Below, one piece after another: positions 12,893 to 64,000 of a DNA stretch of 64,000 nucleotides. This DNA is from Podarcis muralis (taxonomy: Eukaryota): contig NC_135660.1 in NCBI RefSeq assembly GCF_964188315.1, positions 79,670,001 to 79,734,000 of the forward strand, read 5' to 3'. How positions within the stretch are numbered: the stretch's first letter is position 1; each line of letters begins with the position of its first letter. The position numbers and the translations under genes are program-made. The notes under the pieces are model-generated. The model did no database searches. It worked only from the letters and a program-made list of their open reading frames with translations, and had not been told where the DNA came from.

Positions 12893-13640
12893 ATCAACAA
12901 CCTCAGGTATGCAGATGACACAACCTTGATGGTAGAAAGTGAGGAGGAATTAAAGAACCTTTTAATGAGGGTGAAAGAGTGCAAAATATGGTTTGAAGCT
13001 CAACATCAAAAAAATGAAGATCATGGCCACTGGTCCCATCACCTCCTGGCAAATAGAAGGGGAAGAAATGGAGGCAGTGAGAGATTTTACTTTCTTGGGC
13101 TCCATGATCACTGCAGATGGTGACAGCAACCATGAAATTAAAAGACGCCTGCTTCTTGAGAGAAAAGCAATGACAAACCTAGACAGCATCTTAAAAAGCA
13201 GAGACATCACCTTGCCAACAAAGGTCCGTATGGTTAAAGCTATGGTTTTCCCAGTAGTGATGTATGGAAGTGAGAGCTGGACCATAAAGAAGGCTGATCG
13301 CAAAAGAGTCCCATGGACTGCAAGAAGATCAAACCTCTCCATTCTGAAGGAAATCAGCCCTGAGTGCTCACTGGAAGGACAGATCCTGAAGCTGAGGCTC
13401 CAATACTTTGGCCACCTCATGAGAAGAGAAGAATCCCTGGAAAAGACCCTGATGTTGGGAAAGATGGAGGGCACAAGGAAAAGGGGACGACAGAGGATGA
13501 GATGGTTGGATAGTGTTCTCAAAACTACCAGCATGAGTTTGACCAAACTGTGGGAGGCAGTGGAAGACAGGAGTGCCTGGCGTGCTCTGGTCCATGGGGT
13601 CACGAAGAGTCGGACACGACTAAACGACTAAACAACAACA
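12893..13640 (+). mobile_element. Bov-B (RTE) LINE 3' ~750 bp with small internal deletion
   Basis: INNLRYADDTTL RT motif through ..HGVTKSRTRLND; a frameshift, and a deletion at ~13300 relative to the copy at 2081. Confidence 0.93.
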
Positions 13641-41028: not shown

Positions 41029-41405
41029 CTAAAATTCACAGAGTATTAGCCTCTTTTCCCCGCAGGCCCGGTCGTTCCACTTTCCATTCACATAAACCTC
41101 TACACAGTTCTCCCTGCCCTTTTCGTTATTGGGTTCTCCCTGTAGCCAGTTGGAGTAAACGATGGCATCGCCATTCAGATACCTAAATTTCCCCTCCGTC
41201 TGGATATCAGTTACCCCAAGAAAGACCGACTTGTTATGCTGAACAACTATCTGTTGGACAGCTGTGTTCTCCGCAGCATTTTTGGGGGCGGCCAGCTGGC
41301 CCCCGGCTTGCAGACACTTTTGCTTCAGGTCATCAAAGGTGCCTTCGTAGCCGCTGGTTACGAATACTTTGTTACCGACAATTCGCCCTCCCGGGAATGC
41401 TGCAA
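41029..41405 (-). CDS. SFTPD: SFTPD CRD exon
   Basis: Acceptor tgttttag; [27 protein letters not shown]. Confidence 0.95.
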
Positions 41406-43455: not shown

Positions 43456-43502
<47 letters not shown>

Positions 43503-46500
43503 ATTATTTATACCCTGCCCATCTGGTTGGGGTTCCCCAGTCACTCTGGTCAGCTTCCATCACATTTGAAAACATAATAAGATGTCTAACATTAAAAACT
43601 TATTGATACAGGATTTTTAAAATAAAAAAAAACCCTAGCAAGTTAGTTGGTAGGTGGCTTCTGTTTTCCTATGCATGTTAATATCTGATAAACAGCCATA
43701 GCCAATTGGTTTAAAAGGCTGTATGCAGGAGCAGTGTGAACAAATCACCCATCTTTTCTTTTCGTTAACCGGAAAGGAGTGTCAGAGGTTGACATGGAGC
43801 AGAAGCTTGGCATTACACCTGGCACCCCTGGGGCAGAGCCCTTCTGCACTGGTAAGGCGAGTTGCCATTTTAAATTTCCTACAGTGACATGGAAAGTTCT
43901 GGAGCCTCGTGGAGTATTGAAACAGCAGTCCCGGGGGGGGGGGGGAGTGAGTACAGACATTTTCAATGCTCAGTATGCCCTGGAGTGATGCTTTATTCGG
44001 GGTATTGTGGGGAATTTAAAATGATCATTTTTTCATTGCAGGTGGAGTCCCACTGACCTGGGAGGGCATTCAATCCTAGGGCAATTTGCTCCTCAAATTC
44101 AGACCTGAATCTGAGGAGTTCCAGTTTCCTTAAAAAAAAAAAAAGTCATCTAAGTTAGTGGCCAGCTGAAAATCCCTCAGACTAACTATGCACTACATCA
44201 AGAAGTTATTTCTGTTGTCTCTTCGGAACCTTTCTCTTTTTTAAAAAAAAATAATTTTTATTAAATTTTCCATTTTAACAATTCAATCAAATCACATTAA
44301 ATATTCCAAATTATAAAAATACATATCATATAGTCTGAATATTCTGCCAAATTATAAATTTTTATTGGGGCCTCCCATGCTTCAAGTTTGGTGGGGCTCT
44401 GATCATCTTATATCTCTACTGCCTTGAGTTTCCAACAGTTCTTTTAATTCTTCCTGTTGTTACCTTTCCTTTGTTCATGGCCTCTGAGTTGTTTCCACAG
44501 GCAAGTTGAAGTAAGCAATGATATGCTTCTGTGTGAAATTTGTCTGCCTATTGTTTGCTGTATATCCTCACACGCTGGTGTTTATGCCGAATTAATCCAA
44601 CTCTTTGGAACCTTTCTCATGCCATCAGAATGTTTGTTCAGATGCACCTTTTCGTCCACATCACTTACCTCTTTCTCCCACATCTCCTTTCGCTCCCTTT
44701 TCGCCCACTGGGCCTCTGTCGCCTTTGGGCCCAGCCACACCTGTGTCACCTTTGGGACCTTGGGCACCAGTAGCTCCTTTTGAACCTACAGAAATATTGA
44801 ATGGGGAGGGGAGAATCAACAAAAATGGAAGGTACTTTGTAATTATGACAAATGCAAAAGTAGGTAAATAGTTTCAGCTCAGCCCTAGTTTGTCTGTCTG
44901 TCTGTTGTTGTTGTTCCTATGCTGCCCTTCATCCAAAGATCACAGGGAAGTTTACAATATAAAAGCACAAAAATACACACAATAGTAACAAAATACCAGC
45001 CCACCTATGCGGTTTAAAAGGTCATAGATCAGGCATAGGCAAACTCGGCCCTCCAGATGTTTTGGGACTACAACTCCCATCATCCCTAGCTAACAGGACC
45101 AGTGGGCAGGGATGATGGGAGTTGTAGTCCAAAACATCTGGAGAGCCGAGTTTGCCTATGCCTGTCATAGATGGTTTAATTAGCCAAAGGCTGGGAGAAG
45201 AGGAATGCTTTTGCCTAAGATATGTAACAAAAGTGCCAGGCAAGCCTCTCTGGAGAGGGCATTACACAAACAGGGAGCCTGGTCTCATGTTGTTGCCCTC
45301 TGGGCTTCTTGTAGCGGAGGCTCATGAAGAAGGGCTTCAGATGATGATTGCACTGTCTGGCTCAGCTCATATGGGAAGAGGCAGCCTACATCTTAGGTTA
45401 GACATTCTCACAGAAATGATAGCTCCAGTGTTTATATACTATGTTTTGTACTGAGGATATGATAGTCACAATTTTATATCTAGGGGGTAGTCCTGTTAGT
45501 CTGGTATACCAAAACAATGATGAGGCTATGGTACTGCAGAGCAGGGGTAGTCAATATGGTTCCCTCCCAAGGTGAGCTACAACTTACACCATCTTTGCCA
45601 TTGGTTTTGCTGAATGGCGCTGATGGGTTCCAACAACCTCCCATGTTGACTACCCCTGCCTTAGAAACTAGCAAATATATCATAGCACAAGCTTTTCTGG
45701 ACTAGTGTCAGATGCATTTGATGAAGTGGCCTTTATCACTACATTTTATAACTTGCATGTTGCCAGAACATGACTTCAGAAGCTGGCTGTCACAGATCAC
45801 AATCTTTTTGTGACCTCAGCCAATTGCCTAACAATGGGAGTCAAGCTTGAGAGCTGTCAGCCTATGATGTATTTGCTTGTTCTTTCATTGGCATCCACGA
45901 TGGATGTACAGTGGTACCTCTGGTTAAGAACTTAATTCATTCTGGAGGTCTGTTCTTAACCTGAAGCACCACTTTAGCTAATGGGGTCTCCTGCTGCCGC
46001 TGTGCCGCCGCTGCACAATTTCTGTTCTCATCCTGAAGCAAAGTTCTTAACCCGAGGTAATATTTCTGGGTTAGTGGAGTCTGTAACCTAAATGTATGTA
46101 ACCTGAAGCGTATGTAACCCGAGGTACCGCTGTATATATAGAGGGAAACATCAGAGGTATGGGCATTTTATGGTTGCTTTCTCCACTCACATAACATTTA
46201 TAACTTGGAAACTGTACCATACTAAGTATCTTGACAACAGGGTGGATGTGAACATTTAAAATCTGTGACTGGGATCCAAAAAAGCTACTTAGGCATGCTT
46301 AAGGACTTGGACTGACATTTAGGTCTTTTTACTTCTTTTGTTGGATGGTAGGTCTCCGGGGATAACACAAATGGCTGTTTGAGAAGCAGAAGCCCCCAAC
46401 CCCACTGGGTGTGCAGAAGTAGTTGTATGCTCCTTTGGATCCTGGCCACTGTGGTATATTGAACCCTCTTGCAGAAATCCAACTATTTAGCACTTAGGAT

Positions 46501-47442
46501 TACCTGTTTCTCCCTTGACGCCTTTTTCACCTTGTGGGCCATTGTTGCCTTGTGCTCCAGAGGGGCCGACGCTTCCTGGAGGACCCTGCAAACCTCTGAT
46601 TCCACGCGGTCCTACTCAAAAGAAAGCGGTTTTGTGAGCAGGCAGAGATATACACCAAAGGGGGAAGGTCTCTTGTGATGAGTTGCAGTGCATCAGGGGC
46701 TCCTGGGCCTTAGAACTGGGAACACTGAAATGTGCATGCCATTGTCCCAATCTGGTATGCCTTCAGAGTGGTGGAGGACGCTGTCCTAACACTAGTGTTG
46801 AAATAAGTTTCAACTGGAAGTCTGGTGAGGTTCTATACATGGACTGGGGTATGGGCACCATCTTGTCTTTCATCTCAGGCAGCAAAATGTTTTGGGCCAG
46901 TCCTGTACTGGGAGCAAGGGAAGAGCACCTTGGTGGGTTTGTACTCTCGTCCAGGGAAAATGTTTGATGCCATCAATCGGCAGGATGGCCCTCTAACAAG
47001 ACTTAGAGACAGATGTGGATAAAAATATTAAAGAAGTTTGATTTCTTCTAATAATATCTAGCTTTTGTTGAATTTGATGCAATACAATTCCATTTAGTCA
47101 ACAACACTCCTTACCCATTGATCCAGCATCTCCTTTGGGTCCTTGCTCTCCTTGGGTCCCCTTTTCTCCTTGTGGTCCAGCTGGTCCCATTTTTCCAGGA
47201 GGACCAAGAATTCCTCTTGGTCCTGCCAACCCTGGCATTAAGTGGAAGAATGAAAAGTGGGGTTATCTTAATGATAAAGCTTACATATGTGAGGAATGCA
47301 ATACATAATAACCCAAGGGAGAAGTTTATTGAGAGGTGGGCCTTGTTTTTACTTTTCTGGAATGACAGTGGAAATGATATTTCCCCTTTTAACTTATGCA
47401 CGATACTATAGGGTCTTTGTTATGTTGTCCCTTTCTCCTTTC

Positions 47443-47508
<66 letters not shown>

Positions 47509-49322
47509 CTGCATGGGAAGCAAACATGTTTGATGTACAGCTTAATGGTTTTGGCTACATATTGTTATAATATCATATTAAAATCTTTAAAAAGAGGGGG
47601 AAAGTGGTTTACTAAGTGGGTGAACAAGAGGCACTTGTGATGAACACAAGGCTGATAAATTACTGGCAAATCAGTTAAATGAAACGATCTCATGCCAGTT
47701 TCAGTTTAAAGATGCTAAGACAAGAAGCAATGCATAGATTCCAGTCTTGGGTCATCATCATTGCTAAGTTATCTAGGGTTGCCATATTTCAAAAAGTGAA
47801 AATCTGGACGGAGAAGTTGTTGAGCTTTTTTGGCCATACAGTGGTACCTTGGGTTAAGAACTTAATTCATTCTGGAGGTCCGTTCTTAACCTGAAACTGT
47901 TCTTAACCTGACGTACCACTTTAGCTAACGGGGCCTCCTGCTGCCACCGTCGCCACACAATTTCTATTCTCATCCTGAAGCAAAGTTCTTAACCCAAGAT
48001 ACTATTTCTCGGTTAGCGGAGTCTGTAACCTGAAGCGTCTGTAACCCGAGGTACCACTGTAGTTGCAAAAACGACACTGCCGACATTGGTTGCCATATTT
48101 CTGTCTTGACATTTAGCCGATTTCCACCCAGACACTGCTTCTGACTACAGTATTCCAGGTATGTCTGGGAAATTCTGGGTGTATGGCAATCCTAAAGTTA
48201 GCCAAGGCAGCTACATTCAAGGTGGCTGTGGCTGTTGCCATACATCCACCAGATGACATTCCCACCCCCTCCCTATATTTGCTTTCTCCTCTTCTGCCTT
48301 TTCCTTCTCTGTTTGGCATCATGTCCCTCTTAATCCAGGAGAAATGCAGAACATCATGCGGTCTTGCACTTCTAGCCCTCACTGTTGATGGACCTACACC
48401 GTAATCTTTACAGTATCAATTTGAAAACTTAAGATTCATTTTTATATTGATGTCATGCAACTTTGCTTTTATGTTGTCTTGGTAGAATTTTTATGCTGTT
48501 TGCATGTCCAGGCGCTGTGACTCTGCTGCCCCTACCCAGTGGAGAAAAACCAGTCAAGACACATTCTTTTAAGTTGAATAAGAGCACTGCTTTATTGGTT
48601 GCAGATGTAAGAGGTTTGTCATAGGCACTGGGTATAACAACCAACCTGCCTGCTGGAAGTATCTTCTCCATGGGGTCTACCCTGAGGCAAGGAGGTCCTA
48701 TGACTTACATCAAATAGGTATATCTCTGCCAGGATCTCCACTATGGCTCTGGCCCTCACCTGGGAATCTGGATAGAAGCATCTCCTCCAGTATCCTTTTA
48801 ACAGGATACCCCTTTCCCTTGAAAGGGCAGCAAGAGGCTTACAACCTCCCCTCCAACCAAGACTAAGGCTTTTACCTTCAGGTGGTGGTTTAGGCACTGG
48901 ATAAGCCTAAGTCATGGCCAGAGAAGAGGTTGTCTTAACATTGAAAACTAAATGATATTTATCACAAGGCAATGTAATTGGGGGTCATCATGAAGTTGCA
49001 TCATAAGCTGCTTTTGCTTAAATTAGGTGGGACTGCATGGTTTACTGTCTTTCCCCTCCTCCAGTGTGTGAATCAAAAGCTGATCCTCAAAGAACGGGAG
49101 CTCTTAGGAAGTCACCTTTTCCATACCTTGTTCTCCCTTGTCTCCTTTTGGTCCTTGGACTCCATCTCTCCCATTTATCCCTGGTAACCCTTTCTCAGCT
49201 GGTCCACATACAACCAGTGAGCAGGCATTCCGATCCAAGTTCTGGATAACTTGCGGTGAGCCCTGGAACGATGCTGGTGAAAATTGCGAAACCAACACAG
49301 AGAGCGTTAGAAGCACCAGCAT
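41029..49322 (-). CDS. SFTPD: Pulmonary surfactant protein D (collectin gene 4), 7 coding exons, predicted 371 aa
   Basis: Exons 49127-49322 (196 nt; [17 protein letters not shown] vs human NACTLVMCSSVESGLPG), collagen exons 47115-47231 (117), 46504-46611 (108), 44669-44785 (117) and 43314-43430 (117), neck 42420-42503 (84) and CRD 41029-41405 (377; [11 protein letters not shown] identical to human SP-D). The sum of 1116 nt is open, and the architecture matches mammalian SFTPD. Confidence 0.88.
41575..41936 (+). mobile_element. Sauria SINE, full length, different subfamily 3' part
   Basis: Starts gggacgcgggtggcgctg; TSD tatg(c/t)agaagcaaga at 41557-41571 and 41937-41951; the 3' part (ggcctatagagtgag..ggcccgtacgggcagg) differs from the other copies. 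Confidence 0.93.
42420..42503 (-). CDS. SFTPD: SFTPD neck exon (84 nt)
   Basis: tttctcag/AG..AAAG/gtaaat; encodes [28 protein letters not shown]. Confidence 0.92.
43314..43430 (-). CDS. SFTPD: SFTPD collagen exon D (117 nt)
   Basis: ctccatag/GA..TCAG/gtaagg; encodes [39 protein letters not shown] (human ends GDKGAKGESGLP). Confidence 0.92.
43450..43625 (-). mobile_element. L2-type 3' tail
   Basis: (AAAT)n followed by taccctgcccatctggttggggttccccagtcactctgg, as at 7851. Confidence 0.75.
44236..44450 (-). mobile_element. L1-type 3' UTR fragment
   Basis: The minus strand ends ..gtgatttgattg..aataaaaaattattttttttt aaaaaa, resembling the tail of 8336-9445; boundaries approximate. Confidence 0.6.
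44669..44785 (-). CDS. SFTPD: SFTPD collagen exon C (117 nt)
   Basis: ttctgtag/GT..AGAG/gtaagt; encodes [39 protein letters not shown]. Confidence 0.92.
45030..45164. mobile_element. Palindromic hAT MITE
   Basis: Exact TSD tcatagat. Confidence 0.92.
45909..46132. mobile_element. Tigger-like MITE family A
   Basis: TIRs plus TA TSDs. Confidence 0.9.
46504..46611 (-). CDS. SFTPD: SFTPD collagen exon B (108 nt)
   Basis: ttttgagtag/GA..ACAG/gtaatc; encodes [36 protein letters not shown]. Confidence 0.9.
47115..47231 (-). CDS. SFTPD: SFTPD collagen exon A (117 nt, carries PGKMGP)
   Basis: aatgccag/GG..ATGG/gtaagg; encodes [39 protein letters not shown]. Confidence 0.92.
47447..47497 (+). repeat. 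(CT)n microsatellite
   Basis: Directly visible. Confidence 0.95.
47839..48059. mobile_element. Tigger-like MITE family A
   Basis: TIRs plus TA TSDs. Confidence 0.9.
49127..49322 (-). CDS. SFTPD: SFTPD exon: signal + N-terminal CxxxxC + 7 Gly-X-Y
   Basis: Acceptor cccccag at 49339-49345, ATG at 49322, donor CAAG/gtatgg. Confidence 0.88.
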
Positions 49323-50871
49323 TGTTCAGTGGTTTGACCTGGGGGGGGGGGAATAAAAATTAAAGGAGAAAAGAATTAACCCAAACCCAACCGTACCAAT
49401 TATAATGCACTGCAATGAAATGAAGGCCGGCTATATGAACAAGGATTTAAAATATTGTGGGTAAAGTGTTGTTTAATAGATTGAAGTAGGGGATTATGCA
49501 CCATTTCCAACACTCTTAATTTTATTTTGTTTCCTCATCTTTTGAACAGCTACACACAACAAGAAAGTTTTTATGCAAGGTAGGAGAACCCATTGGCCAT
49601 GCTGCCTTGGGGCTGATGCAAGTTGGAGCCCAAGAGCACCCAGAAGAGGCCTCATGCCTATCATAATAGCTAGCACCTATATTATTACTATTATTATTGT
49701 CGTCACTAATAATAATAATATAACCAACCCTTCGCCAACAGGTCCCAGGGTGTGCTTTAAATTCAGTATTATAAACAGGTTTTTTTAAAAAATAAATAAA
49801 TAAAATAAATATTTTGTGATACAAAACAAACACACAAGCAAGGAAAAGTACATATAGTGTCTCCGCTTTCAATTCAGAGTGTCTTTTCATAGTTTGTTTA
49901 CATTCAGTATGAGACACTATTGTCATAGACTTTGGGGGGAAATAGAGGGGAGAGAGAGGGTTGTGGGGTGATGGGCTTTTCATTCTTTGCATAGTGTTTC
50001 TGCAGGGTTTTTGTGTCAGCGTCTCATGAGTAGGTCCTTTATTTATATAGTTATTTGTTTTTTTTGGCATTGTGAGAGACTGGAGGGTCCAAGGTTTGGT
50101 TGGCTGCGTTCGGTTGGTTGCAGTGTGGTTTATTTGCGTGTTAGTGTGTGGGGCTTTTTGTTGTTGTGTCAGGTTAGTCATATTGATTTGTAAGTTGTTG
50201 GGGAGGGGTTAGGTCAGTTAAAGCAAGTTACAATCTCAGGTATGGGGTGTGGGTGTCTTGAAACCACATATCTCAGGTGTCATAGGGCAGGGTATAGAGA
50301 CGTGTATTTAGCATTCAACAAAAACTGTATAGTGAAACTTCCAGACACACCTCCTCACATAAGGCATATTTCAAGAGTGCCGTACTAGATCCCATTTAGG
50401 AAAGAATAAGATTCTGCACTCTACTAGGGGTGGGATTTTCTGCAAATTGCAGTGTCAAGCTTATCTGCATGGTCCCCCCCCCAAAAAAAATATATATTCC
50501 ACCCCCTCCTACATCACTCCTTGATCTTGATGAGAAGTGGGCTATTTATTTATTTTTACTGGTTCTGCTAAAAATACAAATAAGACTCACACATATTAAA
50601 TGCATTCTTATGCGTATCATATTACACATGTATTATGTGCTATTCAGCCAAGTTTTACTTGAAGACTAAGTAGTGGAACTAAATTAGTCATGTTCCCTAA
50701 TTTCAGCAGGTGTGCTCTGAGTAAAACTTGGTTAAATACCAATTGTTATTTGCATATACGTTCCGTGTTTCCTAAAGTAGCAAGCACATAAAGAGATCCA
50801 TAAAGGAATGCATGTAACTGTATTAAAAATATGCATGTAGTAATCTTTGTAATGCATGCAGAAAGATAGCA

Positions 50872-51090
50872 CAGTCGTACCTTGGATCCCAAACGCCGCA
50901 AACCTGGAACTGAGTGTTCCAATTTGTGAACGTTCTTTGGAACCTGAACGTCTGACGCAACTTCCATGGCTTCTGATTGGCTGCAGAAGCTTCCTGCAGC
51001 CAATCGGAAGCCGCACCTTGGTTGCCGAATGCTTTTGGAAGTCGAACGGACTTTGGGAACAGATTCCGTTCGACAACCAAGGTACGACTG
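50872..51090. mobile_element. Tigger-like MITE family B (inverted relative to 19436)
   Basis: TIRs cagtcgtaccttgg/ccaaggtacgactg. Confidence 0.88.
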
Positions 51091-53012
51091 TATATTGGAC
51101 TATTCCATTGAATTTGTTTTACTTCTGAGGTACCCCTGTACTGCATAGGGTTAGCAGGCACTAACTAGGCTTTGGGAAGGAGGAGGGAGGACTCTAGGAC
51201 CCTGTCAGGACCCTCACACCTCCTTCCTGAAGCAAGTGTTTACTAGGCTTTGGGAAGGAGGTAGGAAGGTGCCTTCCTGGCCCTGCACACTGTGTGGGGG
51301 AGTTGCCTCCAGTTCCAGGTTCGATCTCCAGCATCTTAAATCCTGGAAAGTTGTTGCAAGTCAGTGCAAACAATACTGAGCTAGATGGACTGATCTGATT
51401 CAATAGATGTTGCCCTCTGTAGCTGGAGATGCCCACAGCTGAAGCTGGGATTTCCCCATACAAAGCATGGGCTGTACCACTGATCTATGGCCCTTCCCCT
51501 ATTATGCTTCAGCAGCATCTCTGGGCTAAATTGAGTTGATCGAAAACATGAAACCAGAAGGTTATGAAGGGGATGCTGACACCAGATGACTATATGCAAA
51601 GCAGTCAGTTCCCAGCTCTAACTAAGAGGGTATCTCAGCCAGTGGAACTTTTATCACCTGGGTAGGGCAAGCTGTACTTGGCCAAAATATCATTTTCCCT
51701 GCATCATTATAAAAGGAATAGAAATGCCTTCTTCCTTTGCAACGGAATGCCTCCTTCCGAACAATACATTCAAAAGGACAATTTGCCAACTGCATTTAAA
51801 TCAGGGTGTTAAGCAAAATGGATCAAGATACTAACAAATTACATTGCTGTTGGACACAAAATCAACTCGTCGTTAAATCTGGAGATAATTATTAGATAAG
51901 CGCAGGCAGATGTGAAAGGCTGATACGAAAAGCACTTAATAATCAAAGGATGGATTATCAATGAAGAGAGAGTTAAAGCTCTGGTTGAAATTAATCAAAT
52001 CCATGGAGCACAATGCAATCTGACCCGTTTGAACAAGGAACTGGCGGCAGTCTTCAATATCGCATGTATTTCAGTCGCATAGCCATCATTAAGGAAGGAC
52101 AAATTAAAAATCTACTCACTCACTTTGACGTTTCTGGTGCTCTACAAAGGCCCGGACAGGAATCATCCGTTAGGAGTTCAGCCTTCCTTTTATAGGCTAT
52201 GAGTTAAGTAACACAGGCTTTGGTTTCTCAATCATGTGACCTCGCAGGAAACTTATAGCCAATTTATAACACTTTGGGAGCTGTTGGCCTCTTTCAACGT
52301 TGTGTAGCTGATAAGACATGCACAGAACAAAGGATGGGATTTCCCATGGCTTGCAAAATGTAAGGAATTTGTCTTTTGGAGCAAAAGGGCTGGGGGCTCA
52401 AATATGCATGAATGTTATCCTAGAACATTTTTACTATGCAGAACATTGAGCAGCATATCTTGCCAGTAACAGGACTCAATGGTCAGGGTTTCCCCAGATG
52501 TGGCTAATGACCCCACTGGAACCAAAGAACCATAGAATTGTAGAGTTGGAAGGGACTACGAGGGTCATCTGGTCCAACCCACTGCAATGCAGGAATCTTT
52601 TGCCCAAAGAATGATAGGGTAAGTGATGGTTGAGTGGTTGACTCGTAGCTGAGTGTGTGAACAGTCTCCATGGAAAAGCATTGCATTTGAGGCATTGCCC
52701 AGTGATATGAAAACTTGGAACTGGTTCAAGCATGTTCAAGCTTTGATGACTGCAGCATCAGAAAAGAACAAGTGTCATGTCCTACTCCTAGAGTCTGGTT
52801 GGCTGGCTCCTTTGGGAAGCAGGATGCTAGGCTAGAGAGGACGTTGGTCTGATCCAGCAAGTTTTATATATCCTCATGCTCTCTAGAGCACAGGTAGCCT
52901 GTTGTGGACTGCAGCTCCCATCAGCCTCAGTCAGCATGGCCAATAGCCAGGTATGATGGGTGTAGCAGTGTAAAGCATCTAGAGGGCACCACGTTGACTA
53001 TCCATCTTAGAC

Positions 53013-53148
53013 CAGTGTTTCCCAACCTTGTGCCTCCAGCTGTTTTTGGACTACAATTCCCATCATCCCTTGCCACTGGTCTTGCTAGTCAGGGATGATG
53101 GGAGTTGTAGTTCAAAAACAGCTGGAGGCACAAGGTTGGGAAACACTG
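53013..53148. mobile_element. Palindromic hAT MITE (cagtgtttcccaac family)
   Basis: Exact 8-bp TSD tcttagac. Confidence 0.9.
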
Positions 53149-53436
53149 TCTTAGACTATGTGGCTATCTGGCAACTCCAGATGCTCATGGGAGGCCCAGA
53201 AATGAGGCTTGAATGCAATGTGCTCTCCTCATGTGAATGGACCATCATAGATGGTCTCATACACAACATTGCTCATTGGAGTCAGGGCACATGTTAGCCT
53301 GCCCATCAATAAGTGCTCTAAGATGTAAAGTGGCCTTATTCTAAACCTGACCATCCATCTGTTTCATGCTGTACTGTCTACTCTCAATGGCAATAGCTGA
53401 TCCAGGTCTCAAGCAGAGTTTACTCCAGCTCTACTA

Positions 53437-53662
53437 CAGTGGTACCTCTGGTTAAGAACTTAATTCGTTCTGGAGTTCTGTTCTTAACCTGAAACTGTTC
53501 TTAACTTGAAGCACCACTTTAGCTAATGGGGCCTCCTGCTGCCGCTGCACCGCTGCCACACAATTTCTGTTTTCATCCTGAAGCAAAGTTCTTAACCCAA
53601 GGTACTATTTCTGGGTTAGTGGAATCTGTAACCTGAAGTGTCTGTAACCTGAGGTACCACTG
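53437..53662. mobile_element. Tigger-like MITE family A
   Basis: TIRs plus TA TSDs. Confidence 0.9.
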
Positions 53663-54741
53663 TACTAGAAATTGTCTAACTCACCTTCTCCAATCTTGGG
53701 TCCCCAAATGTGCTCAGATCCCATCATCCCCAGCCAACTCAGCTAATAGTCAAGGATGGTGAAATGTGTGATCCAACAACTTTTGGGACATCTTGGGGAA
53801 AGCTTTTCTAACTATGTATGGTACCAGGGGTAGCTACTTATCTGTGAATAGCATCTACATCACCCTTGTGCTATGACTCCTCCTCGCCATTATGCACATG
53901 AAAGAGTGACATTTTCTGTGGTGTTTGATCTATGATACCTCATTCAGACATGCAAATTGGCACTTTATATAACATGCGATTGCCATGAACGGCTTTTTAA
54001 AATGCTGTTTCTCCCACATCCAGTTTTGCAAGATTTTGGCTCACTCCCAACTCCTCCCCGTAAAAAGCATGGCATAGCTGAATAACCAGCTCCACCTTAC
54101 CAAATTGTTGTGCAACATCATGTACTTTTGGGAGTGCTTAAGGAACTCCAAATATGTTATAATCACCCATGGGTAATCCTGACAACGCCCCTTTGAAAGA
54201 GAGAGACACACGGTTTTTTCACACAAAGATTTTCTTCAACAACAGTATTTCACCAGGCATTCTAAAGCTGATCCATTTCCATAAGCTTTCTGACCCCTCC
54301 TCTCCCTGAGCTCTGAGTCTCCAGCTTTAAAAACCAGCGGTTAAAATGGTGCTCTCTGAAACAGCAGTATATTAAGTAACTGGCATGTGCTTATGCATTG
54401 TTTGCAAAATCCATAGCTTAGTACTCTGTATAGTACTTTTTCAGCACATTTCTGTCTCTTGAGAAAACGTTTCAGCAAAGTAAATGGAACCTCCTTAACC
54501 GCTCATTTCAACAGTCACAATAGTGCTTCGCCGAGCCCCACGACCAACCTGTAATTTCCTTCCTGTGATTCCATACTTAAATCATGGCATTTGCTACCAC
54601 GAGATGTGGTGACGGCCCCTAGCATGGATAGCTTTAAAAGGGGATTAGAAATAGTCCTGAAGGGTAAGGTTATCAATGGCTACTAGTATGCCTCTGCATA
54701 GCAGTTGCTGAGAATCATGAATGGGATGGGGCTGAGTGGTT

Positions 54742-54893
54742 GAGCTTGGATAGCTCAGTTGGTTAGAGCACGGTGCTGATTAAGCCATGGTCGCAGGTTC
54801 AATCCCCATATGGGACAGCTGCATATTTCTACATTGCAGGGGGCTGGACAAGATGACCCTCAGGGTCCTTTCCAACTCTACAGTTCTATGACT
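54742..54893 (+). mobile_element. tRNA-Ile-like-headed SINE with CR1-type tail (POM-SINE-like)
   Basis: gatagctcagttggttagagcacggtgctgattaagccatggtcgcaggttcaatcccc + ..ccaactctacagttctatga. Confidence 0.8.
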
Positions 54894-55119
54894 ACATGAA
54901 ATAAAAGTAAATTAATGTCCTGATTGAGCGCTTCCTGGAGCTATTGGATTGGCCACTGTGGGAACAGACTGCTAGATGGAGCCTTTGGTTTGATTCAGCA
55001 GCACCAACGTGCCCCAGCTACTCTGGACAGCTTCCAACAAAATATTTCAAACACTTTAGAAAGTAATGCCAGCATTTTGAATGAGAATTTTTGTGTGTGT
55101 GTGAGAGAGAATGGACATT

Positions 55120-55415
55120 GCATTGCCAATGGCCCATCTAGTCCAGTATCCTGTTCCCACAGTGGCCAACCAGATGCCTTTGGGAAGCCAGGGAGCAGAA
55201 GATGAACACAACAGCAATCTCCCCTCCCTTGGTTTCCAGCAACCATGGAGGTAGAGCCACAACCATTATAGCTACTCTCTATTGATAACCATCCTCTCCA
55301 TAAATTTGTCTTTTGAAGCCATCCAAGTTTGTGGCCATGACTGCTGCTTGGGGGAGCATGTTCCATAGTTTGACTATGCACTGTAGGGAAAAGTACTTTC
55401 TTTTTTCTATCCTAA
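55120..55415 (-). mobile_element. CR1 3' end, old
   Basis: ggcccatctagtccagtatcctgttcccacagtggccaaccagatgcc.. is a reverse-oriented CR1 tail; boundaries approximate. Confidence 0.65.
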
Positions 55416-56606
55416 ATCTCCCAACAGGAACACCACCAGTCTAATACATCCTGGGAGGGAATTCCAAAGGGGAGATGCCACTGTCCGTACACTAAAGGCC
55501 TCTTGTCCAATTCTTTCCTCTTCTCCATGTTGAGCTGTTGAGGCATAAATTTCAATTGCATGTTATATCTAGGCAAGCAGGCTAGTCTGAACTTTTGTGG
55601 GCAAGTAAGGTTTGGTTCATTTGAGCCCTAGTCAGGGAAAATCTCAGGTAAGGTTTGAGTAGGGCCAGCATCTAAAAGGGATGAATGACATTCCATTATT
55701 GGGTGCACTGTGAGCTCACATAACTATTAAACCTACCAGTAATCCAGGAAATGGTTTTACCACTAATACCACTTTTGCCAATAAGGTACTCTTTGTCTTC
55801 CACATGTCCTATATCTCTGGCTGACAATGACCTGCTGTGATGATGATTTAATTTTAAAGTCATTCTTGGCATATGGAACAAGTTCAAAGGAAAACAGTCT
55901 GAAACTGGAGGAACTCTCCAAGATAAAGGAATCGTTTGTGCAAATAAATCCGCGTGGGCAGAGCCAGGGAGGGCGTTGTTATAGAGGCACAAGCATTCCG
56001 CCCCTCCTGATCCAGTTGCAGAATTAGACAGCTATTATAGATATAATATGATGAAGAATGGCAACTGGTGTGTGTATCTGAGCAGGGGGGCAGGCAATGG
56101 AAGTAAGGAAATAAGGAGATAAGTATTTTATAATTACATGGTTTCATGCCTTCCTTGTTTACTTGAGTCTTTCCCCAACACTGTGTCAACAGAGTTTAAT
56201 GGGCTTCACCAGTTCAAAACAACTGCTGTGCAGTAAGGATTATCCTTGTTATTTGTCTAGAAATTTTCAATCTCCTCTTCCCCCACTGATATTAATAGCT
56301 TTGCAGGGTGGGGGAAGTCCGGTCGTAGTATGAGGAAGGGCCTTGCCAGCACTGGCGCCAGCTGTCGGCATCCACAGGCAGCTGCTAAGACCGCCATACA
56401 AAAGCAGAACTCACTGTCACCGAGAGTATGGCATGTTGGGAGGCCAGGCATGTGAGCCACCATTTTGAATTTCCCATAGTTCCCTGGACTGTTATGGTGG
56501 GTACCTTCAGGCAAGCACAAATGGGGGAGGATGCAGCTAACATTTCTTCCTCCCACCCTCCCTTCTTACCTTGCACTTCTGGTACAAATTGTGACCTAGT
56601 AATAAT

Positions 56607-56642
<36 letters not shown>

Positions 56643-56740
56643 AATAATAATAATAATTTATTATTTATACCCCGCCCATCCGGCTGGGTTTCCCCAGCCA
56701 CTCTGGGCGGCTTCCAACTGAATATTAAAAACAGTACAGC

Positions 56741-56901
56741 NNNNNNNNNNNNNNNNNNNNNNNNNNNNNNNNNNNNNNNNNNNNNNNNNNNNNNNNNNNN
56801 NNNNNNNNNNNNNNNNNNNNNNNNNNNNNNNNNNNNNNNNNNNNNNNNNNNNNNNNNNNNNNNNNNNNNNNNNNNNNNNNNNNNNNNNNNNNNNNNNNNN
56901 N
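56741..56901. other. Assembly gap (161 N) between L2-like tails
   Basis: Run of N; the left flank is (AAC)n(AAT)n plus an L2 tail. Confidence 0.99.
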
Positions 56902-58297
56902 TTTACACCCCACCCTCCCCAGCCAAGACCAGGCTCAGGGCAGCTAACACCAGGTATAAAAACAATTGATTAAAATACAAATTAAAAACAATATTAAAAT
57001 ACAACATTAAAATGCAGCCTCATTTCAGTAGAAACTCAAATCAAAAACTTTTTGGGGATGAAAACATCAAATCTTCACCAAGGCCAACTATCCAGACTGG
57101 TCCTACATGGGCCAGAAAAAAGCCAGGGAAGTCCCCAAATAGGAGTTCCATCACAGAAGGAGAAAGGAAAAAGGAAAGAGGGAGAGGGGATCAAGTTGAT
57201 TCCAAGCCAAAAGCTTGTGAACCCATAATGTGTCTTGAACCCGTGACAGGATGTCAGGTGGATCCAGCCAATGTGCCTTCAGCAGGGCCAGCCTAAGATG
57301 TTGTGCTACCCGAGGCAAAGAACAAAATAGCCTCGCCCAGAAACCAACTGGAATGTCAGTTGGGTTTTTTTTCTTCTTCCAATGCTGGCAATGGGGGAAT
57401 TCTTCATGGCACTTGAGGGCAGCAGTCTAGTTTAGGGGGTGGAGGACTGGCAACGTTGGACACAGAACTCTGCCCTATATAATAGGGGGGCATGACTGGG
57501 AGGCTGCAGGTCATTGCCCACACCGCGCTGGCAATATCTGCCCCCTAAGGCAGTTTCTGCACTCTTCATAGTAATAGGCTGGCCCTGGTTATCACCTGGG
57601 TCTACCTAAAGGAAGAACTGTAGGGAGACCAGCCAAGGAAGCCTTCTTGAATTTAAAAAAACCCACTGGGATCCACCTTGCTTGCTATTCGGAGATGACC
57701 CTGCCATGCAGCAGATTGCCTTTGCCTTCCTGACAATCTTCATTCATCTCAGCCTGCCCTCAACTACATAGGATCTGCCCAAAGTGCCTTAAACACATGC
57801 AATGTCTTATATAAAGCATGTTATGATTGTCTCAATGCGTAGGCAGGAGAAATGACAAATTAAAAATAAATAAATCCTAACACAGACCTTCGTAGGGGGA
57901 GCATTTTCCCCCCTGCACATACCAACCTTTGCTATTGGTGGAGGCACAGTCTGCCTCTCTACAGCTGGCAGTGACACAATGTTCCTGAGAGAACAGAGCA
58001 GTTCTTCTCTGAGGAAATTAATACCTTTGTGAGATTTAGTGTTAGGAGAAAAGCACGGCTCAATTTACCTGCATGTGAATTAAATCAGAGAACCCCAACC
58101 AAACTGGAGATCCCATTGTACCATTATGGGGGAGCTTCCCAAATGCAAAAAATGTGTGTGTGTGAGAGAGGGGGTCTATTCTGTTTCTTTGACCTCAGGT
58201 TCAATTGACAGCACCTTCATAACATGAGTGGTATAAGGGTAACATAGTCAGGCCATCCAGCAGCAGAAACAGAGCAGTGTGTGTCTGTAGATGTGTA

Positions 58298-58647
58298 AAG
58301 GTAAAGGGATCCCTGACCATTAGGTCCAGTCGTGGGCGACTCTGAGGTTGCGGCGCTCATCTTGCTTTATTGGCCGAGGGAGCCAGTGTACAGCTTCCGG
58401 GTAATGTGGCCAGCATGACTAAGCTGCTTCTGGTAAACCACAGCAGCACACAGAAATGCCATTTACCTTCCCGCCGGAGTGGTACCTATTTATCTACTTG
58501 CATTTTGACGCACTTTCGAACTGCTAGGTTGGCAGGAGCAGGGACCGAGCAATGGGAGCTCACCCCGTCATGGGGTTTCGAACCGCTGACCTTCTGATCA
58601 GCAAGCCGTGGGCTCTGTGGTTTAGACCACAGCGCCACCCGCGTCCC
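58298..58647 (-). mobile_element. Sauria SINE, full length
   Basis: 13-bp TSD ctgtagatgtgta at 58285-58297 and 58648-58660. Confidence 0.95.
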
Positions 58648-59183
58648 CTGTAGATGTGTACAATTAGGTAACGCGGGTGGCGCTCAGGTAGCCCTCCCTC
58701 CCTCTGCCAATGAACACTTTCTGTAACACTGAAGGGGACCCTCCTACATGGATATATACTTCATGAAGATTTTCCTCTTCCAACTAGCCTTTCTGCGTTG
58801 CAGCTATTTTCCACTGTTTTTATTTTATTTTTTTACACTTTTCTGGTTTTATGGTTGTGACCTTTTCATTTGTTTTATAATTGTATATTTGATTGTTGTA
58901 ACGCACCCTGAGTCATTACAGTAAGCAGAGGTGACAGCTGCTTAGGGTGATTGAGGGGGCCCAGCTCAACAACCTAATATCGCATGTGCAATGTCACATG
59001 ATGTTCCGACGTTGCGCGTGCAACATTGCGAGGAGCCGGGGCGGAACTGAATGCCCTCTGAACATTGAGGGGGCCCAGACTCCTAAAAAACAAAACAAAA
59101 ACAAAAAAAGGGGGGGGGGGAGAGAAAATGCTATGATGATAAGGATGGGTAAGAAATCCAGTAAGTAAGCAAATAGCAAATGA

Positions 59184-59425
59184 CAGTGGTACCTCGGGTT
59201 AAGAAGTTAATTCGTTCTGGAGCTCCGTTCTTAACCTGAAACTGTTCTTAACCTGAGGTACCACTTTAGCTAATTGGGCCTCCTGGTGCCGCTGTGCCGC
59301 TGCCACACAATTTCTGTTCTTAACCTGAAGCAAAGTTCTTAACCCAAGGTACTATTTCTGGGTTAGTGGAGTCTGTAACCTGAAGCGCCTGTAACCTGAA
59401 GTGTCTGTAACCCAAGGTACCACTG
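59184..59425. mobile_element. Tigger-like MITE family A
   Basis: TIRs; the left TA is mutated to GA. Confidence 0.88.
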
Positions 59426-59736
59426 TAATAGTGTGTGCATGTACAGCTCTCTCTGTAGGATGTCAAGATGGGTGGGGTATAAATAATTTTTTTAAAATTT
59501 ATTATTATTATTATTGACCAGTCTTCCAATTGCCATGGAAGGAAGGGGCTGTACATGCAGAGGTCCCTGTCAACCTGATGCTGCTTGCACATCATCCGGA
59601 GGTGTGACTGGTACATGCAGCAGCATTTAGCAAGTGGGGTTAGCCGCATGTATTCTCAGAAACCTCTTCCCAATGCCAGAATGAACCACAAGACACTTCA
59701 ATCCACCCCAGACCTGATTTTTGTTTTGGTTGAAAC

Positions 59737-59840
59737 CAGTGCTATTTTTCACGGAACTCACCATGAACACCTCTCTCATTCTCTTAGAATGGCAGTGGCG
59801 CCCACCTGGGAAGTGCCAGCTGAAGAAAAACAAAGCCCTG
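59737..59840. mobile_element. hAT-type MITE (same family as 4072/9460, inverted, internally deleted)
   Basis: cagtgctatttt../..aaagccctg; exact TSD gttgaaac. Confidence 0.85.
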
Positions 59841-60482
59841 GTTGAAACCCTAACAAATGCTAAATCACATTCCTAAACCCCTTCACTTCTGCTCCTTCAA
59901 ATCATTACCCCAAAGAAATGATGGTCTTTAAAATATTTTTCATTGTCCCATGGAGTCTTGAGCTGTGCTTGCCAGCTATTTGCTGAACATTGCAATTTGA
60001 CAGTAAAACGGAGTGTTTTGCAAATCTTTATTTTTGCTATGACTAAATCAAGACTCGTTCAATACTTGCTTGAGCTGACAAGCAAACAAAGAGCCTCCTG
60101 GCAGTCACAGAGGCAATGGATTGAAAACTTTAATAATGTATATGGGAGAGTGTAAGAAAACAAACTTACACATTCCCTGGGGATGACTTTTTTCCCCTTT
60201 TCATTTTACTGGATTCTGTCACTATCTCTTATTCAAAGATCTTAATTGGAAATAGGATGTGTTTCTTGATATGCTGTACTCTGATTCAGAAAATGGTTGT
60301 AGGTGATTTTTCACACGCCGTAAAGTTTTCTCCATGGGAGATACCACTTCAAATAAGGGAAATAAAATAGCAAACAGTGTATTGCTTATATCTCCTTCAA
60401 ACATGTCACAAAACTGAAAGGAGAGCAGTGCTTTGGGGTTTTCTTTTGGTTTGTTGGAAGTCTTCGTGCTGAAATAAATATA

Positions 60483-60706
60483 CATTCGTACCTTGGTTCT
60501 CGAACAGAATGCGTTTGGGAAGTCCGTTCGACTTCCAGAACTGTTCGAAACCAAGACGCGGCTTCTGATTGGCTGCAGGAACAAGCTGCAGCCAATCAGA
60601 AGCTGCGCCAGATGTTCGGCTTTCGAAAACACTCGCTTCCGGTTTTTGATTGTTCAGGATTCGAAACGTACGAGTTCCAAGGCGTTTTGCAACCAAGGTA
60701 CGGCTG
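60483..60706. mobile_element. Tigger-like MITE family B
   Basis: Degenerate TIRs with TA TSDs; core gcttctgattggctgcagga shared with 19436 and 50872. Confidence 0.8.
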
Positions 60707-61468
60707 TAATTGGTAAGTAAGAAGCTGAAGCAAATGTTTTCCAAAGCTGATATGCAGTTCAAAAAATGGCATCATAGGAGCCAACTCCTAGGGGCTGAGG
60801 TCCCTTCATTCCCCCATAAAATATTTGAGTGGGCCAGCCCCCCCCCAAACGTTGATATGCATTGCTATTCAAATGGAATGTGTGTGCTGTGTCATGTAAT
60901 CAGTTATGTGGGGCGGGCCTTACCTGCCCCCCCCCATATTTTATCCAAGTTGGCACCCCTGAATGGCATGCTTGACACTCTTTAAGAAATTATTGTATAC
61001 AACACACACAGCCTTTGGAGACAATGTTCAGAATAAGATGCAAATGTGCCTACTGATTAGTATGAGTTGGTTGCCTTTATATATTTTAATTGTACCTGCT
61101 TTGATTGTGTTTTCTTGGAGGAGTGGTTGGTAAATATAAAATGAACAAATGGGTGGTTGATGACACTTTGAAGCATGATGACTCTGGGAAAAACGACTAA
61201 CTGATGCAACATGAGTGCTGTTAAGTATATACGCTAAGGAAGTCTGGTTTTGACCGGGAAGAGAAAGTGTGAGTTTCAAAAGATGTTTGCATTTTAGTTC
61301 ATGTATTGTTTCAGAATGTGTGACTTAGGTAGGTAGGTTCACCTTGCTGGCCTGGCTTAACAGAAACTGGGGTGGGTAATATGGAGTAGGTTTATCTTTC
61401 CTAGGCATAAGCTTCATACATGACCGACAAAACACATATCAAGCGTACCAGAGAAGCTCAAGCAGTGC

Positions 61469-61658
61469 CATTTATTTATTTATCACAATCATTTACTTCC
61501 CATCCTTCCTCCAAGAAGCTCAAGGAAGTATACATGGGGGCTTCCCAATGTTATCCTCATAACACAGCAAGGTAGGTTAGGCTGAGAGTCACCCAGAGGG
61601 TGAGACTTTGAACCTAGGTCCTCCTTGTCCACCACTCTTTCCAATTAACACCACACTG
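61469..61658 (-). mobile_element. MIR/CORE-like SINE directly after gene 5 stop codon
   Basis: Minus strand cagtgtggtg..gacctaggttcaaa..gggtgactc..ctcagcctaacctaccttgc..(TAAA)n tail. Confidence 0.6.
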
Positions 61659-61667
61659 ATTCTGAAT

Positions 61668-62008
61668 TTAGGGGATAAAGGAAAATTCACAAACAGTGAG
61701 GAGCTTCTCTTTGCATGATGTAGAGTGCCACTTTCCATCTTTGGCAGCTTTTGTACAGTTCTTAGATCCATCAGAGTTGCTTGGTTCCCCAAATGCCCAG
61801 TTTGTGTATGCGTCAAAATTGTGGCCCGTAACATAGGCCGATTTCTCATGCCTCTTCAACACACTCTGCAAAGCGTTGGCCTCAGCCTCCTTCTTCGGAG
61901 AAGGAACATGACCGCCAGCGGCGAGACAGGTGGCACTGAGCGTTTCGAAGTCCCCTTCACCAAGATTTGTGGTGTATAACCTTTCACTGCCAGTTCCAAA
62001 ACTGCGAG
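61668..62008 (-). CDS. Gene 5 exon: degenerate CRD
   Basis: Open frame RSFGTGSERLYTTN..CLAAGG..YTNWAFGEPSN..C..GKWHSTSC..CEFSFIP*. Confidence 0.88.
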
Positions 62009-63190
62009 CTGGAAATACAGGAGACAATCATTCCAATAATTTCAAATGCTCTGCTGCTACAAGTTGGTTGATATAGACCCCAATATTCACGATGCACTAT
62101 GGAGCAACTTAAGTGAAAGACCCAAGCAGCTTACGATCTGAGATCAGATGTGGAGGACGGCAATGGAGAAGCAAAGGGCAATGCACCTTATTTAAAGAGT
62201 AGGAGGTTAAAAATTAAAACTGTTGTTGTTGTTTAGTTGTTTAGTCATGTCCGACTCTTTGTGACCCCATGGACCAGAGCACGCCAGGCACTCCTGTCTT
62301 CCACTGCCTCCCACCGTTTGGTCAAACTCAAAAATTAAAACTAGCAATGTTCTAATATGCTATGAGTCTATTTTCAGCAATTTGTAAACACGGAATCCTG
62401 TGTTACGTTGGAAATGAACAGGAACTCAGTAATGGCAGGCAAGATTGCTGAGGAAGCATTGGTTAAGCACTCAATCTGTAGCTGCAGGAGAGCTTTAGGT
62501 ACCTACCATTGGTGTCTCCTTCAGATGCTGTTTATTTTTAGTTATTAAATTTCTCCCATAATTCCTGACCATTGGCTACGCTGGCTGGGGCTGATGGGAG
62601 CCCTAGTCTATCAACAGCTGGAGGGCACTATGTTGACAGTCTCTGACCCATTCAAACCCGAGAGCATAACCCAGAATCTCTGGCAAGACACACATACCTC
62701 CCAACATTTCTCCAATGAAATAGGGACATTCTAAGGAAAAGCGGAACATTCTGGAATCTAATCAGAAAGCTGAACGGCTTCTGTAAATTTGGGACTGTCC
62801 TGGAAAATAGGGACGTCTGGACACAATGTTTCCGCAGCATAGACATTGTACCTTGGGACACTTGTTTCCTCATCAAAGTGAAAATCACTAGCCAAGACCA
62901 GGAATTATTTTTATCAACATTTCAATATTGTGATAACTCCCAAATCCTAAATACTTAAAAAAAAAAAAAAATCTTTAAAAGCTGGCAGCAAACATAACAT
63001 ACTGAGTGTAATTCTAAAGTGGACCACTTAATGGAAATCCACATTGAAAAGAATCTAGGATTCTGGGAAAGGTTTGAGGGAAATAACATACTTCCAGCTG
63101 TCTTACCTTTATGGACTGTAAAAAAAGCATTGTCTAGTGCGTCCAATTTTATTTTCAAATGGTTCACAGTTTCTTCCAAACTGTGTACTC
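61668..63190 (-). CDS. Collectin gene 5 (partial, 5' exons beyond window): neck + non-canonical C-type lectin domain
   Basis: Neck exon 63107-63190 (84 nt, cctttcag/GA..AAAG/gtaaga) splices in frame to the CRD exon 61668-62008 (341 nt, acceptor tatttccag). The CRD reads EPS..WHS..CEFSFIP* and keeps all four Cys. Confidence 0.85.
62222..62329 (-). mobile_element. Bov-B extreme 3' end (108 bp)
   Basis: 13-bp TSD aaaaattaaaact at 62209-62221 and 62330-62342; (AAC)n tail. Confidence 0.92.
63107..63190 (-). CDS. Gene 5 exon: 84-nt neck
   Basis: Encodes GVHSLEETVNHLKIKLDALDNAFFTVHK; GT-AG, phase 1. Confidence 0.88.
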
Positions 63191-64000
63191 CTGAAAGGAA
63201 AAACAGTATCACTTTCACTGGGACTTAACTCTCCAAGACAAATATCCAGGAACATTTAATATTCCTTGGGCTTGCTATCTTTTCTTTCAAAGGATTTCTA
63301 TCCATCTGAAGAAATACTATTAGCTATTATGCATGCATTATACCTATTCTCTTTGGGTATGGCATTTACTTTTAAAACTCTGAATATACACTTTTCATTC
63401 TTCAATTGGATCCCCTAAGTTCAACATATGTCTAAAGAATATATGGATCTGGCTTACGCAAAACCAGACAATTGCCCCATTTCGTGTATTAGCTATGTTA
63501 ACTGACAGTGGCTCTGGTCTAACTCTTATGAACAGTAAGTGCTAGTTAACCCTATTTCTGGATTGTCCCACTTTAGGTAAGGTCCCACACATCTGAGTGC
63601 TTATCCAAAAAGAAACATTCCTTGCACACAGAAAGCTATAAGGCAAGGCCCAGCCTTGATTTGTTGGCTTCTGTGTGCTGTGATTTGTTCATTTTTTAAA
63701 TAGTAGATCAACACCTGAGTCCCATTCTACTGTTTCTGAGATGGTACAGTCCAAACACAGGTTAACCACCCCACCAGCAGCTTTTGAGAACTAGATCTCA
63801 GGCAGAAGTCTTTGCCATCTCTATTGCCTAAGATCCCTTTTTGATTGGAGATGTCAAGAACCAAGGTTTTTGCATCGAAAGCCTGTGTTGTACCCCTGAG
63901 CTATGTCTGATCCACGTGCTTATTATACGAACGTACTTTTGTTCAAATCTTCGTCTGGGGTTGGATGTGAGCTGGTCAAAGATGTTCCCAGAAGAAGAAC

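Follow-up and report, generated by a model that had tools for sequence, protein, structure and literature searches.

The window analyzed here, a stretch of 64,000 nucleotides of the Podarcis muralis genome, contains five C-type lectin exons, all on the minus strand and ending near positions 6063, 20137, 30743, 41029, and 61668, together with Gly-X-Y collagen exons that accompany the first four lectin genes only. Gene 4 (40990-49200) possesses five collagen exons and a CRD of the SP-D type, which scores 161 bits against human SP-D versus 127-128 bits against SP-A and conglutinin. It is the immediate downstream neighbor of gene 5 on the same strand, gene 5 being located about 20 kb upstream in a head-to-tail arrangement, and a run of 161 N at 56741-56901 (an assembly gap or a masked stretch) sits between the two genes. 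Gene 5 is composed of the following features.

63937..64000, minus strand: 3' part of the first coding exon, whose translation covers the end of the signal peptide and a brief N-terminal stretch (...VLLLGTSLTSSHPTPDEDLNK plus base 1 of an Arg codon)
63191..63936, minus strand: intron 1, 746 nt, GT..AG, with its joint found in a spliced contig
63107..63190, minus strand: neck exon VHSLEETVNHLKIKLDALDNAFFTVHK, an alpha-helical coiled-coil segment, 84 nt, phase 1 at both ends, from its translation and both joints
62009..63106, minus strand: intron 2, 1098 nt, GT..AG, with its joint found in a contig of run X6
61668..62008, minus strand: C-type lectin-like domain (CTLD) exon and stop codon, 341 nt, stop at 61670-61668
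61465..61667, minus strand: 3' UTR, with overlapping AATAAA signals at 61480-61471; the X6 contig covers 61465-61860

The window does not reach the first 8 codons of gene 5 or its promoter. The portion of the first coding exon that falls within it (63937..64000) matches residues 9-29 of P0002, a PLIalpha-LP of Podarcis raffonei belonging to the alpha-type phospholipase A2 (PLA2) inhibitors discussed below, and is followed by a GT donor at 63936-63935; the codons split at the two ends of the neck exon are AGA (Arg) and GCT (Ala). Among public runs of the same organism, considered over the region 61000-64000, one contig, from run X1, links 63937 with 63190 at a depth of ∼2411, and another, from run X6, links 62008 with 63107. 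X1 and X6 belong to two studies, and their RNA nature is a guess for which the spliced joints argue, a DNA retrocopy being formally possible. Run X1 has no contig over the lectin exon despite the deep joint between the first exon and the neck exon, but such holes carry no proof. In the raw RNA runs X21 and X23, few reads come from the lectin exon, and their first mate is always on the plus strand, which fits an RNA transcribed from the minus strand. Gene 5 is open within the window, canonically spliced, and transcribed. Its intron 2 also carries a SINE-like repeat (62221-62330), with copies at 13534-13644 and 2405-2514 that are 93-95% identical; in each of the four RNA/contig runs, this repeat is covered to an enormous depth and adjoins a wide variety of flanks, and it is evidently high copy and widely transcribed.

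The lectin exon (62008..61668) is preceded by a polypyrimidine tract and a CAG acceptor, starts in phase 1, and encodes 112 residues, open to the stop codon. Its CTLD matches the Pfam Lectin_C profile with an E value of 2.8e-12 (47.7 bits, versus 68-91 bits for the four neighboring CRDs) and is 36-46% identical to the domains of genes 1-4. Alignment with the latter reveals a single clean gap of 13 residues between SAYVTGHN and FDAYTNW (between ∼61818 and 61817), and the HMMER alignment with conglutinin shows the same 13-residue gap at the same position. EPS (61787-61779) stands in place of EPN, KNC in place of E[ND]C (N83 at 61760-61758), and WHS (61730-61722) in place of WND; all four Cys (C27, C84, C98, and C106, with codons at 61928, 61757, 61715, and 61691) are retained. 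Two further features, missed in an earlier note made from the DNA letters of the window, are a 3-residue insertion near the N terminus relative to genes 1-4 (GTGS) and a 4-residue SFIP tail after CEF. The Ca2+-dependent sugar site of collectins, which comprises EPN/QPD, the Glu before Cys3, WND, and the site-1 loop, is thus not present in gene 5.

In the spliced form, the neck exon follows the signal exon immediately, and therefore no collagen exon lies between them. Neither intron of gene 5 contains a run of at least three Gly-X-Y triplets in any frame, the collagen exons of the window found no tblastn match in 49500-64000, and the orthologues of gene 5 are 167-171 aa long with no Gly-X-Y. 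Gene 5 lacks the Gly-X-Y stretch that collectins carry between the N-terminal segment and the neck, and it is not a collectin. Its organization (apart from the first 8 codons, outside the window) is that of a precursor of ∼166-171 aa made of a signal peptide, a short N-terminal segment, the neck exon, and one CTLD, without collagen, as in the alpha-type PLA2 inhibitors. The earlier note had described an intact collectin and called for a search for collagen or a MASP motif upstream. The label of collectin has to be given up, since the signal exon joins the neck directly, the orthologues are devoid of Gly-X-Y, and the introns hold no collagen relic; the spliced joints and the intron scan revealed neither of the two motifs. 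Its account of the domain itself is fully confirmed by the translation and the alignments, namely, the open frame, the four Cys, the 13-residue deletion, and the EPS, KNC, and WHS motifs, and the splice sites are indeed kept, the acceptor being visible and the boundary at 62008 being backed by a spliced contig. We also concur that the domain cannot use the canonical Ca2+/sugar site, given the deleted loop and the EPS, KNC, and WHS replacements, and that the gene is intact and expressed rather than a decaying pseudogene, as attested by the open exons, the canonical splicing, and the spliced contigs.

A word search with the lectin exon alone returned 8 matches, all from squamates, of 145-170 aa and with E values of 1e-31 to 1e-68. 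The exon product is 97% identical to its counterpart in Podarcis lilfordi, 95% identical to a P. raffonei "phospholipase A2 inhibitor alpha-like protein," and 86% identical to a Lacerta agilis "PLIalpha-like protein"; the other matches come from Rhineura, two iguanians, one gecko, and one snake. A profile of six full-length members retrieved 43 relatives, again all from squamates, with nothing between an E value of 1e-43 and the cutoff of 1e-10. These relatives include the serum inhibitors of Gloydius brevicaudus, Protobothrops flavoviridis (PLI subunit B), Bothrops moojeni, Lachesis muta, and Atropoides (anMIP). An exhaustive HMMER search, considering single-domain full-length matches above 130 bits, added only Tiliqua scincoides (a skink), Varanus komodoensis (a monitor), and a skink-like Logan fragment, all with the gap, and the next single-domain match, at 127 bits, is a collagenous collectin of 250 aa with an intact loop. 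No PLIalpha member was found outside squamates by the profile and exhaustive HMMER searches, and the family was sampled in gecko, skink, lacertid, amphisbaenian, monitor, iguanian, and snake, which represent every major squamate lineage searched. A maximum-likelihood tree pairs gene 5 with P. lilfordi as its sister (100/87), places it within Lacertidae (100/98), and separates the PLIalpha clade from collectins 1-4 of the window at 100/99; its branching follows squamate phylogeny, as for one-to-one orthologues.

Several database entries of this family deserve a comment. Residues ∼34-52 of the annotated P. lilfordi protein (P0001) correspond to a +1-frame reading of the signal-peptide exon, which in the window and in P. 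raffonei reads LLGTSLTSSHPTPDEDLNK, and the neck exon is skipped; the deposited gene model is a misprediction and not a real variant. The Varanus komodoensis PLIalpha-like entry (P0192) is 417 aa long and is probably a fused gene model. Naja naja has two diverged PLIalpha-like copies (P0021 and P0027), one of them on a long branch (0.24).

In all 43 aligned rows, the same 13 residues are missing, a GSGS insertion is present, Cys3 is no longer preceded by Glu, WND is gone, and the tail is SFI(P) or YFI; the alignment also shows that three of the five Ca2+ site-2 ligands are replaced throughout the PLIalpha family. Since these losses are common to all squamate PLIalpha proteins, they are ancient: as judged from the alignment, the gap and the loss of the Ca2+ ligands are old family traits that, together with the loss of the collagen tail, would go back at least as far as the most recent ancestor shared by today's lizards and snakes. 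The loss of the site is hence not a special event of gene 5, the identical gap and ligand losses being found across the family, including in the characterized snake inhibitors. EPS is recent, as it occurs in Podarcis and independently in geckos, whereas Lacerta, Rhineura, iguanians, and many snakes have EPN and vipers have QPN; such a change is what one would expect of a motif that has become vestigial once its site was dismantled.

Sequence similarity, placement within the clade, and a CTLD that is free of Ca2+ ligands and carries the shared indels all assign gene 5 to this family. With a probability of roughly 0.87, we propose that gene 5 is the lacertid orthologue of squamate PLIalpha/PLIalpha-LP, a small secreted protein of ∼170 aa that would act in the manner set out below. 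That the CTLD of alpha-type PLA2 inhibitors is Ca2+-free has been on record since the 1990s. This property of the family and the RefSeq names of the orthologues in the sister species were already known, and gene 5 is a newly added member.

The fold of the domain is preserved in silico. An AlphaFold2 model of the exon product, computed with the family alignment, has a mean pLDDT of 85.5 and a pTM of 0.78, the lowest values (∼63) being found around the shortened loop. Foldseek relates this model to the CRDs of SP-D, SP-A, and conglutinin, with a TM score of ∼0.8 at ∼30% identity; no PLIalpha structure was present among the PDB matches. For the oligomeric state and for the comparison of necks, the P. 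raffonei orthologue P0002 (95% identical) served as a full-length stand-in, the exons of the window having been searched singly. A homotrimer model of P0002 residues 20-170 scored 0.89 versus 0.15 for the best control, with at least 93% contact agreement between runs and a partner pLDDT of at least 88. In the calibration of this score, 21 of 30 proteins whose solved structure is a pair of one chain reached the mark, as against 0 of 23 whose solved structure is a single chain. At the interface of the model lie the neck heptads and tail residues 164 and 166-168, which pack on the neck of the neighboring chain. This result supports a homotrimer, but it may reflect the memory that the model has of solved collectin neck+CRD trimers, and we take it as a likeness rather than as a proof.

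The closest relatives of gene 5 are, in order, the colubrid PLIalpha-LP, the viper PLIalpha, and the collectins, which gave rise to the family. The serum alpha-type PLA2 inhibitors of snakes (G. brevicaudus PLIalpha, P. flavoviridis PLI-A/B, and the MIPs of Bothrops and Atropoides) belong to the same orthology group and are ∼50% identical to gene 5, with which they share a precursor of ∼166-170 aa, a signal peptide, a neck helix exon, one CTLD, the same gap, the four Cys, and a hydrophobic tail. Viper PLIalpha differs by QPN instead of EPS and by a YFI instead of an SFIP end, as well as by N26, K/R28, Y144, and an N-F-T sequon at Asn103, all of which are missing in the lizard. Colubrid members are 53-56% identical to gene 5, a comparison which uses other colubrids, as no Elaphe sequence was among the matches. 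The collectins SP-D, conglutinin, SP-A, and MBL and genes 1-4 have the same fold (TM score of ∼0.8), phase-1 neck and CRD exons, and a neck+CRD part that is trimeric, as in the model of the PLIalpha protein; genes 1-4 moreover occupy the same locus in the same orientation. Unlike the collectins, gene 5 has no collagen and no Cys-rich N-terminal segment, its site-1 loop is deleted, its site 2 is dismantled, and it carries an extra tail. Snaclecs, NK receptors, and type II antifreeze proteins resemble gene 5 in using the CTLD fold without the Ca2+/sugar site, yet there is no close kinship: snaclecs are loop-swapped heterodimers in which the long loop is kept, whereas gene 5 is a putatively neck-trimerized derivative of collectins with a shortened loop. 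Some CTLDs also bind glycans without Ca2+.

Alpha-type PLA2 inhibitors are trimers of ∼20-kDa subunits with a CRD-like domain that is devoid of Ca2+-binding residues, and they bind their ligand in a Ca2+-independent manner (PMC5364564, PMC5175389). Indeed, the known activity of the family is that of a homotrimer which binds PLA2 independently of Ca2+ (PMC5175389), and the members found in vipers bind and inhibit venom PLA2 (PMC5364564). In the snake proteins, the ligand is bound at the neck and the central pore and not at the sugar site of the CTLD, and the determinant of inhibition is the neck segment 13-36, which corresponds to exon 3 of the P. flavoviridis gene (PMC5175389) and of which the neck exon of gene 5 is the counterpart. 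Based on what is established for the family, our current working hypothesis is that three chains of gene 5 would assemble through the coiled coil of the neck, the hydrophobic C-terminal tail of each packing on the neck of its neighbor, and that the protein would be secreted into plasma, the family being one of plasma proteins made in the liver. The trimer would recognize a protein ligand independently of Ca2+ and of sugar, near the central pore on the neck side and not at the destroyed sugar site; in vipers, this ligand is the venom PLA2. A charged pair, E23/K28, was reported to stabilize the Gloydius trimer. The lizard sequence has K23/D28, a reversed pair that could still bridge.

Whether gene 5 has the features of a functional PLA2 inhibitor can be judged from the neck determinants of segment 13-36 and from Tyr144. 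Gene 5 has A26, D28, N29, and S144 and an Ala at Asn103, where inhibitory viper proteins have N26, K/R28, D/Y29, Y144, and the N-F-T sequon at Asn103, and it thus lacks the sequence signature of the inhibitors. Residues R57, K71, R108, and H109, also pointed out in the literature (PMC5364564), do not fall on basic residues under the numbering used here and play no part in this comparison. Gene 5 agrees instead with the colubrid PLIalpha-LP type, represented by Elaphe quadrivirgata and Elaphe climacophora and judged here from Pituophis P0012, in having K23, an acidic residue 28, N29, S144, and no sequon or glycan at Asn103; position 26 is Glu in colubrids and is therefore non-Asn there as well. 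PLIalpha-LP from the nonvenomous Elaphe inhibited none of the PLA2s tested (PMC5175389). Because gene 5 carries nonviper states at the determinants, a PLIalpha-LP-like behavior is expected, and the protein most likely resembles, by analogy, the PLIalpha-LP of nonvenomous snakes, a plasma trimer that acts weakly, if at all, on the acidic PLA2 of vipers. As for the ligand in the lizard, an endogenous secreted PLA2 is possibly the most economical guess, and a role against predator venom, albeit possible, is less likely.

The latter role would imply that gene 5 is a working PLA2 inhibitor directed against the venom of snakes that prey on the lizard and that an arms race drives its accelerated change. 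We regard this as unlikely. The inhibition of venom PLA2 by the viper members of the family (PMC5364564) speaks for it, and so does the faster change seen in Podarcis on the former sugar-binding face. This change includes V85T, which creates an N-C-T sequon at N83-C84-T85 (61760-61752), the sole N-glycosylation sequon of the mature protein; gene 5 has neither the Asn103 sequon of vipers nor the sequon that precedes Cys1 in geckos, Rhineura, and some iguanians. However, N26, K/R28, Y144, and the Asn103 sequon are all absent from gene 5, which has the states of the noninhibitory colubrid PLIalpha-LP (PMC5175389), the family is also present in geckos, skinks, and monitors, and our literature search found no lizard data on this point.

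The pace of change in Podarcis bears equally on the strength of selection. Crown Squamata is ∼200 My old. The open frame, the four Cys, and the core of the PLIalpha proteins are conserved from gecko to snake, which argues strongly, albeit indirectly, that the family is constrained, and we infer purifying selection on gene 5 from this conservation across squamates alone. Within Podarcis, the replacements comprise D88A, at a site that is 95% conserved and in all three Podarcis species, along with V85T, S64F, and N76S; N43A, also at a 95% conserved site, is found in this genome only. Relative-rate counts (Tajima) of this genome versus Lacerta are 9:3, 8:1, 8:1, 6:0, 6:3, and 6:4 with six outgroups, with chi-square values of 0.4-6 on ∼10 sites, and the Podarcis stem branch of the tree measures 0.10 versus 0.032 for Lacerta. 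This suggests a faster change in Podarcis, which is not significant on so few sites and which would fit relaxation as well as adaptation.

A relaxed constraint, with gene 5 being an incipient pseudogene in Podarcis that is still open and transcribed, is in our opinion improbable. N43A, D88A, V85T, S64F, and N76S do affect sites conserved in the family, the relative-rate counts point to Podarcis as changing faster than Lacerta, the Podarcis stem branch is long, and the two raw RNA runs contain few reads. Against these observations, all three exons keep an open frame, both in the window and across three Podarcis species, canonical sites are used for splicing, a depth of ∼2411 is reached by the spliced form in run X1, the four Cys and the core are preserved, and the relative-rate tests are weak.

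The interpretation of gene 5 as an unrecognized collagen-bearing collectin, which would have lost its sugar site recently and would serve as a decoy, a regulator, or a heterotrimer partner of its neighbors, appears very improbable. In its favor, the gene does lie among clustered collectins, the phases of its neck and CRD exons are those of collectin genes, and conglutinin and SP-D come out as its best matches of solved structure. Yet the joint between the signal exon and the neck already refutes its collagen part, and the collagen-free orthologues of 167-171 aa and the lack of any Gly-X-Y relic stand against it, as do the fact that the losses are common to all squamate PLIalpha proteins and the dissimilarity between the neck of gene 5 and those of genes 1-4. 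A role as a decoy or as a heterotrimer partner, advanced in the earlier note, receives no support, the known activity of the family being the binding of PLA2 by a homotrimer (PMC5175389). The parallel drawn in that note with CTLDs that bind proteins and not sugars is apt. The binding of carbohydrate by gene 5 at a noncanonical, Ca2+-independent site seems just as remote, since the retention of the CTLD fold in the model and in the Foldseek comparison is offset by the deletion of the site-1 loop, by the family-wide replacement of three of the five site-2 ligands, and by the location of ligand binding at the neck and central pore in snakes (PMC5175389).

We thus return to gene 5 as the lacertid PLIalpha/PLIalpha-LP and to what its location implies. 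It has long been proposed that PLIalpha derives from a collectin whose collagen exons were lost. The tandem arrangement of gene 5 with an SP-D-like gene constitutes direct genomic evidence for this derivation and for an origin of PLIalpha by tandem duplication in a collectin cluster. A literature search for a lizard PLIalpha or for SFTPD linkage found no paper, which is not proof of absence. Other collagen-less proteins of this type exist in frogs: Pelobates (P0105), Hyperolius (P0191), and Lithobates/Rana (P0182) have SP-D/SP-A-like proteins of 176-196 aa with a signal peptide, a neck, and a CRD but no collagen. These keep EPN, WND, and the full loop and, from their sequences, look like independent collagen-less derivatives of collectins that would still be sugar competent.

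The presence of the family in all the squamate lineages sampled, with no member found outside squamates, suggests that the antivenom activity of vipers was probably a late co-option. Tentatively, we can envision a scenario in which PLIalpha had a single origin at or before the squamate ancestor, as an SFTPD-adjacent duplicate that lost its collagen exons and its site-1 loop, served an endogenous ligand before it became the self-antivenom of viperids, and is being reshaped in Podarcis, on the former sugar face (EPS, D88A, N43A, and N-C-T), toward a lineage-specific ligand; this scenario is possible, although we would not favor it over its alternatives. Gene 5 is of little consequence for lectin biology, and the finding is real but ordinary. 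Its modest interest lies with its position next to the SP-D-like gene and with the original ligand of the PLIalpha family, for which a nonvenomous lizard would be a convenient test system.
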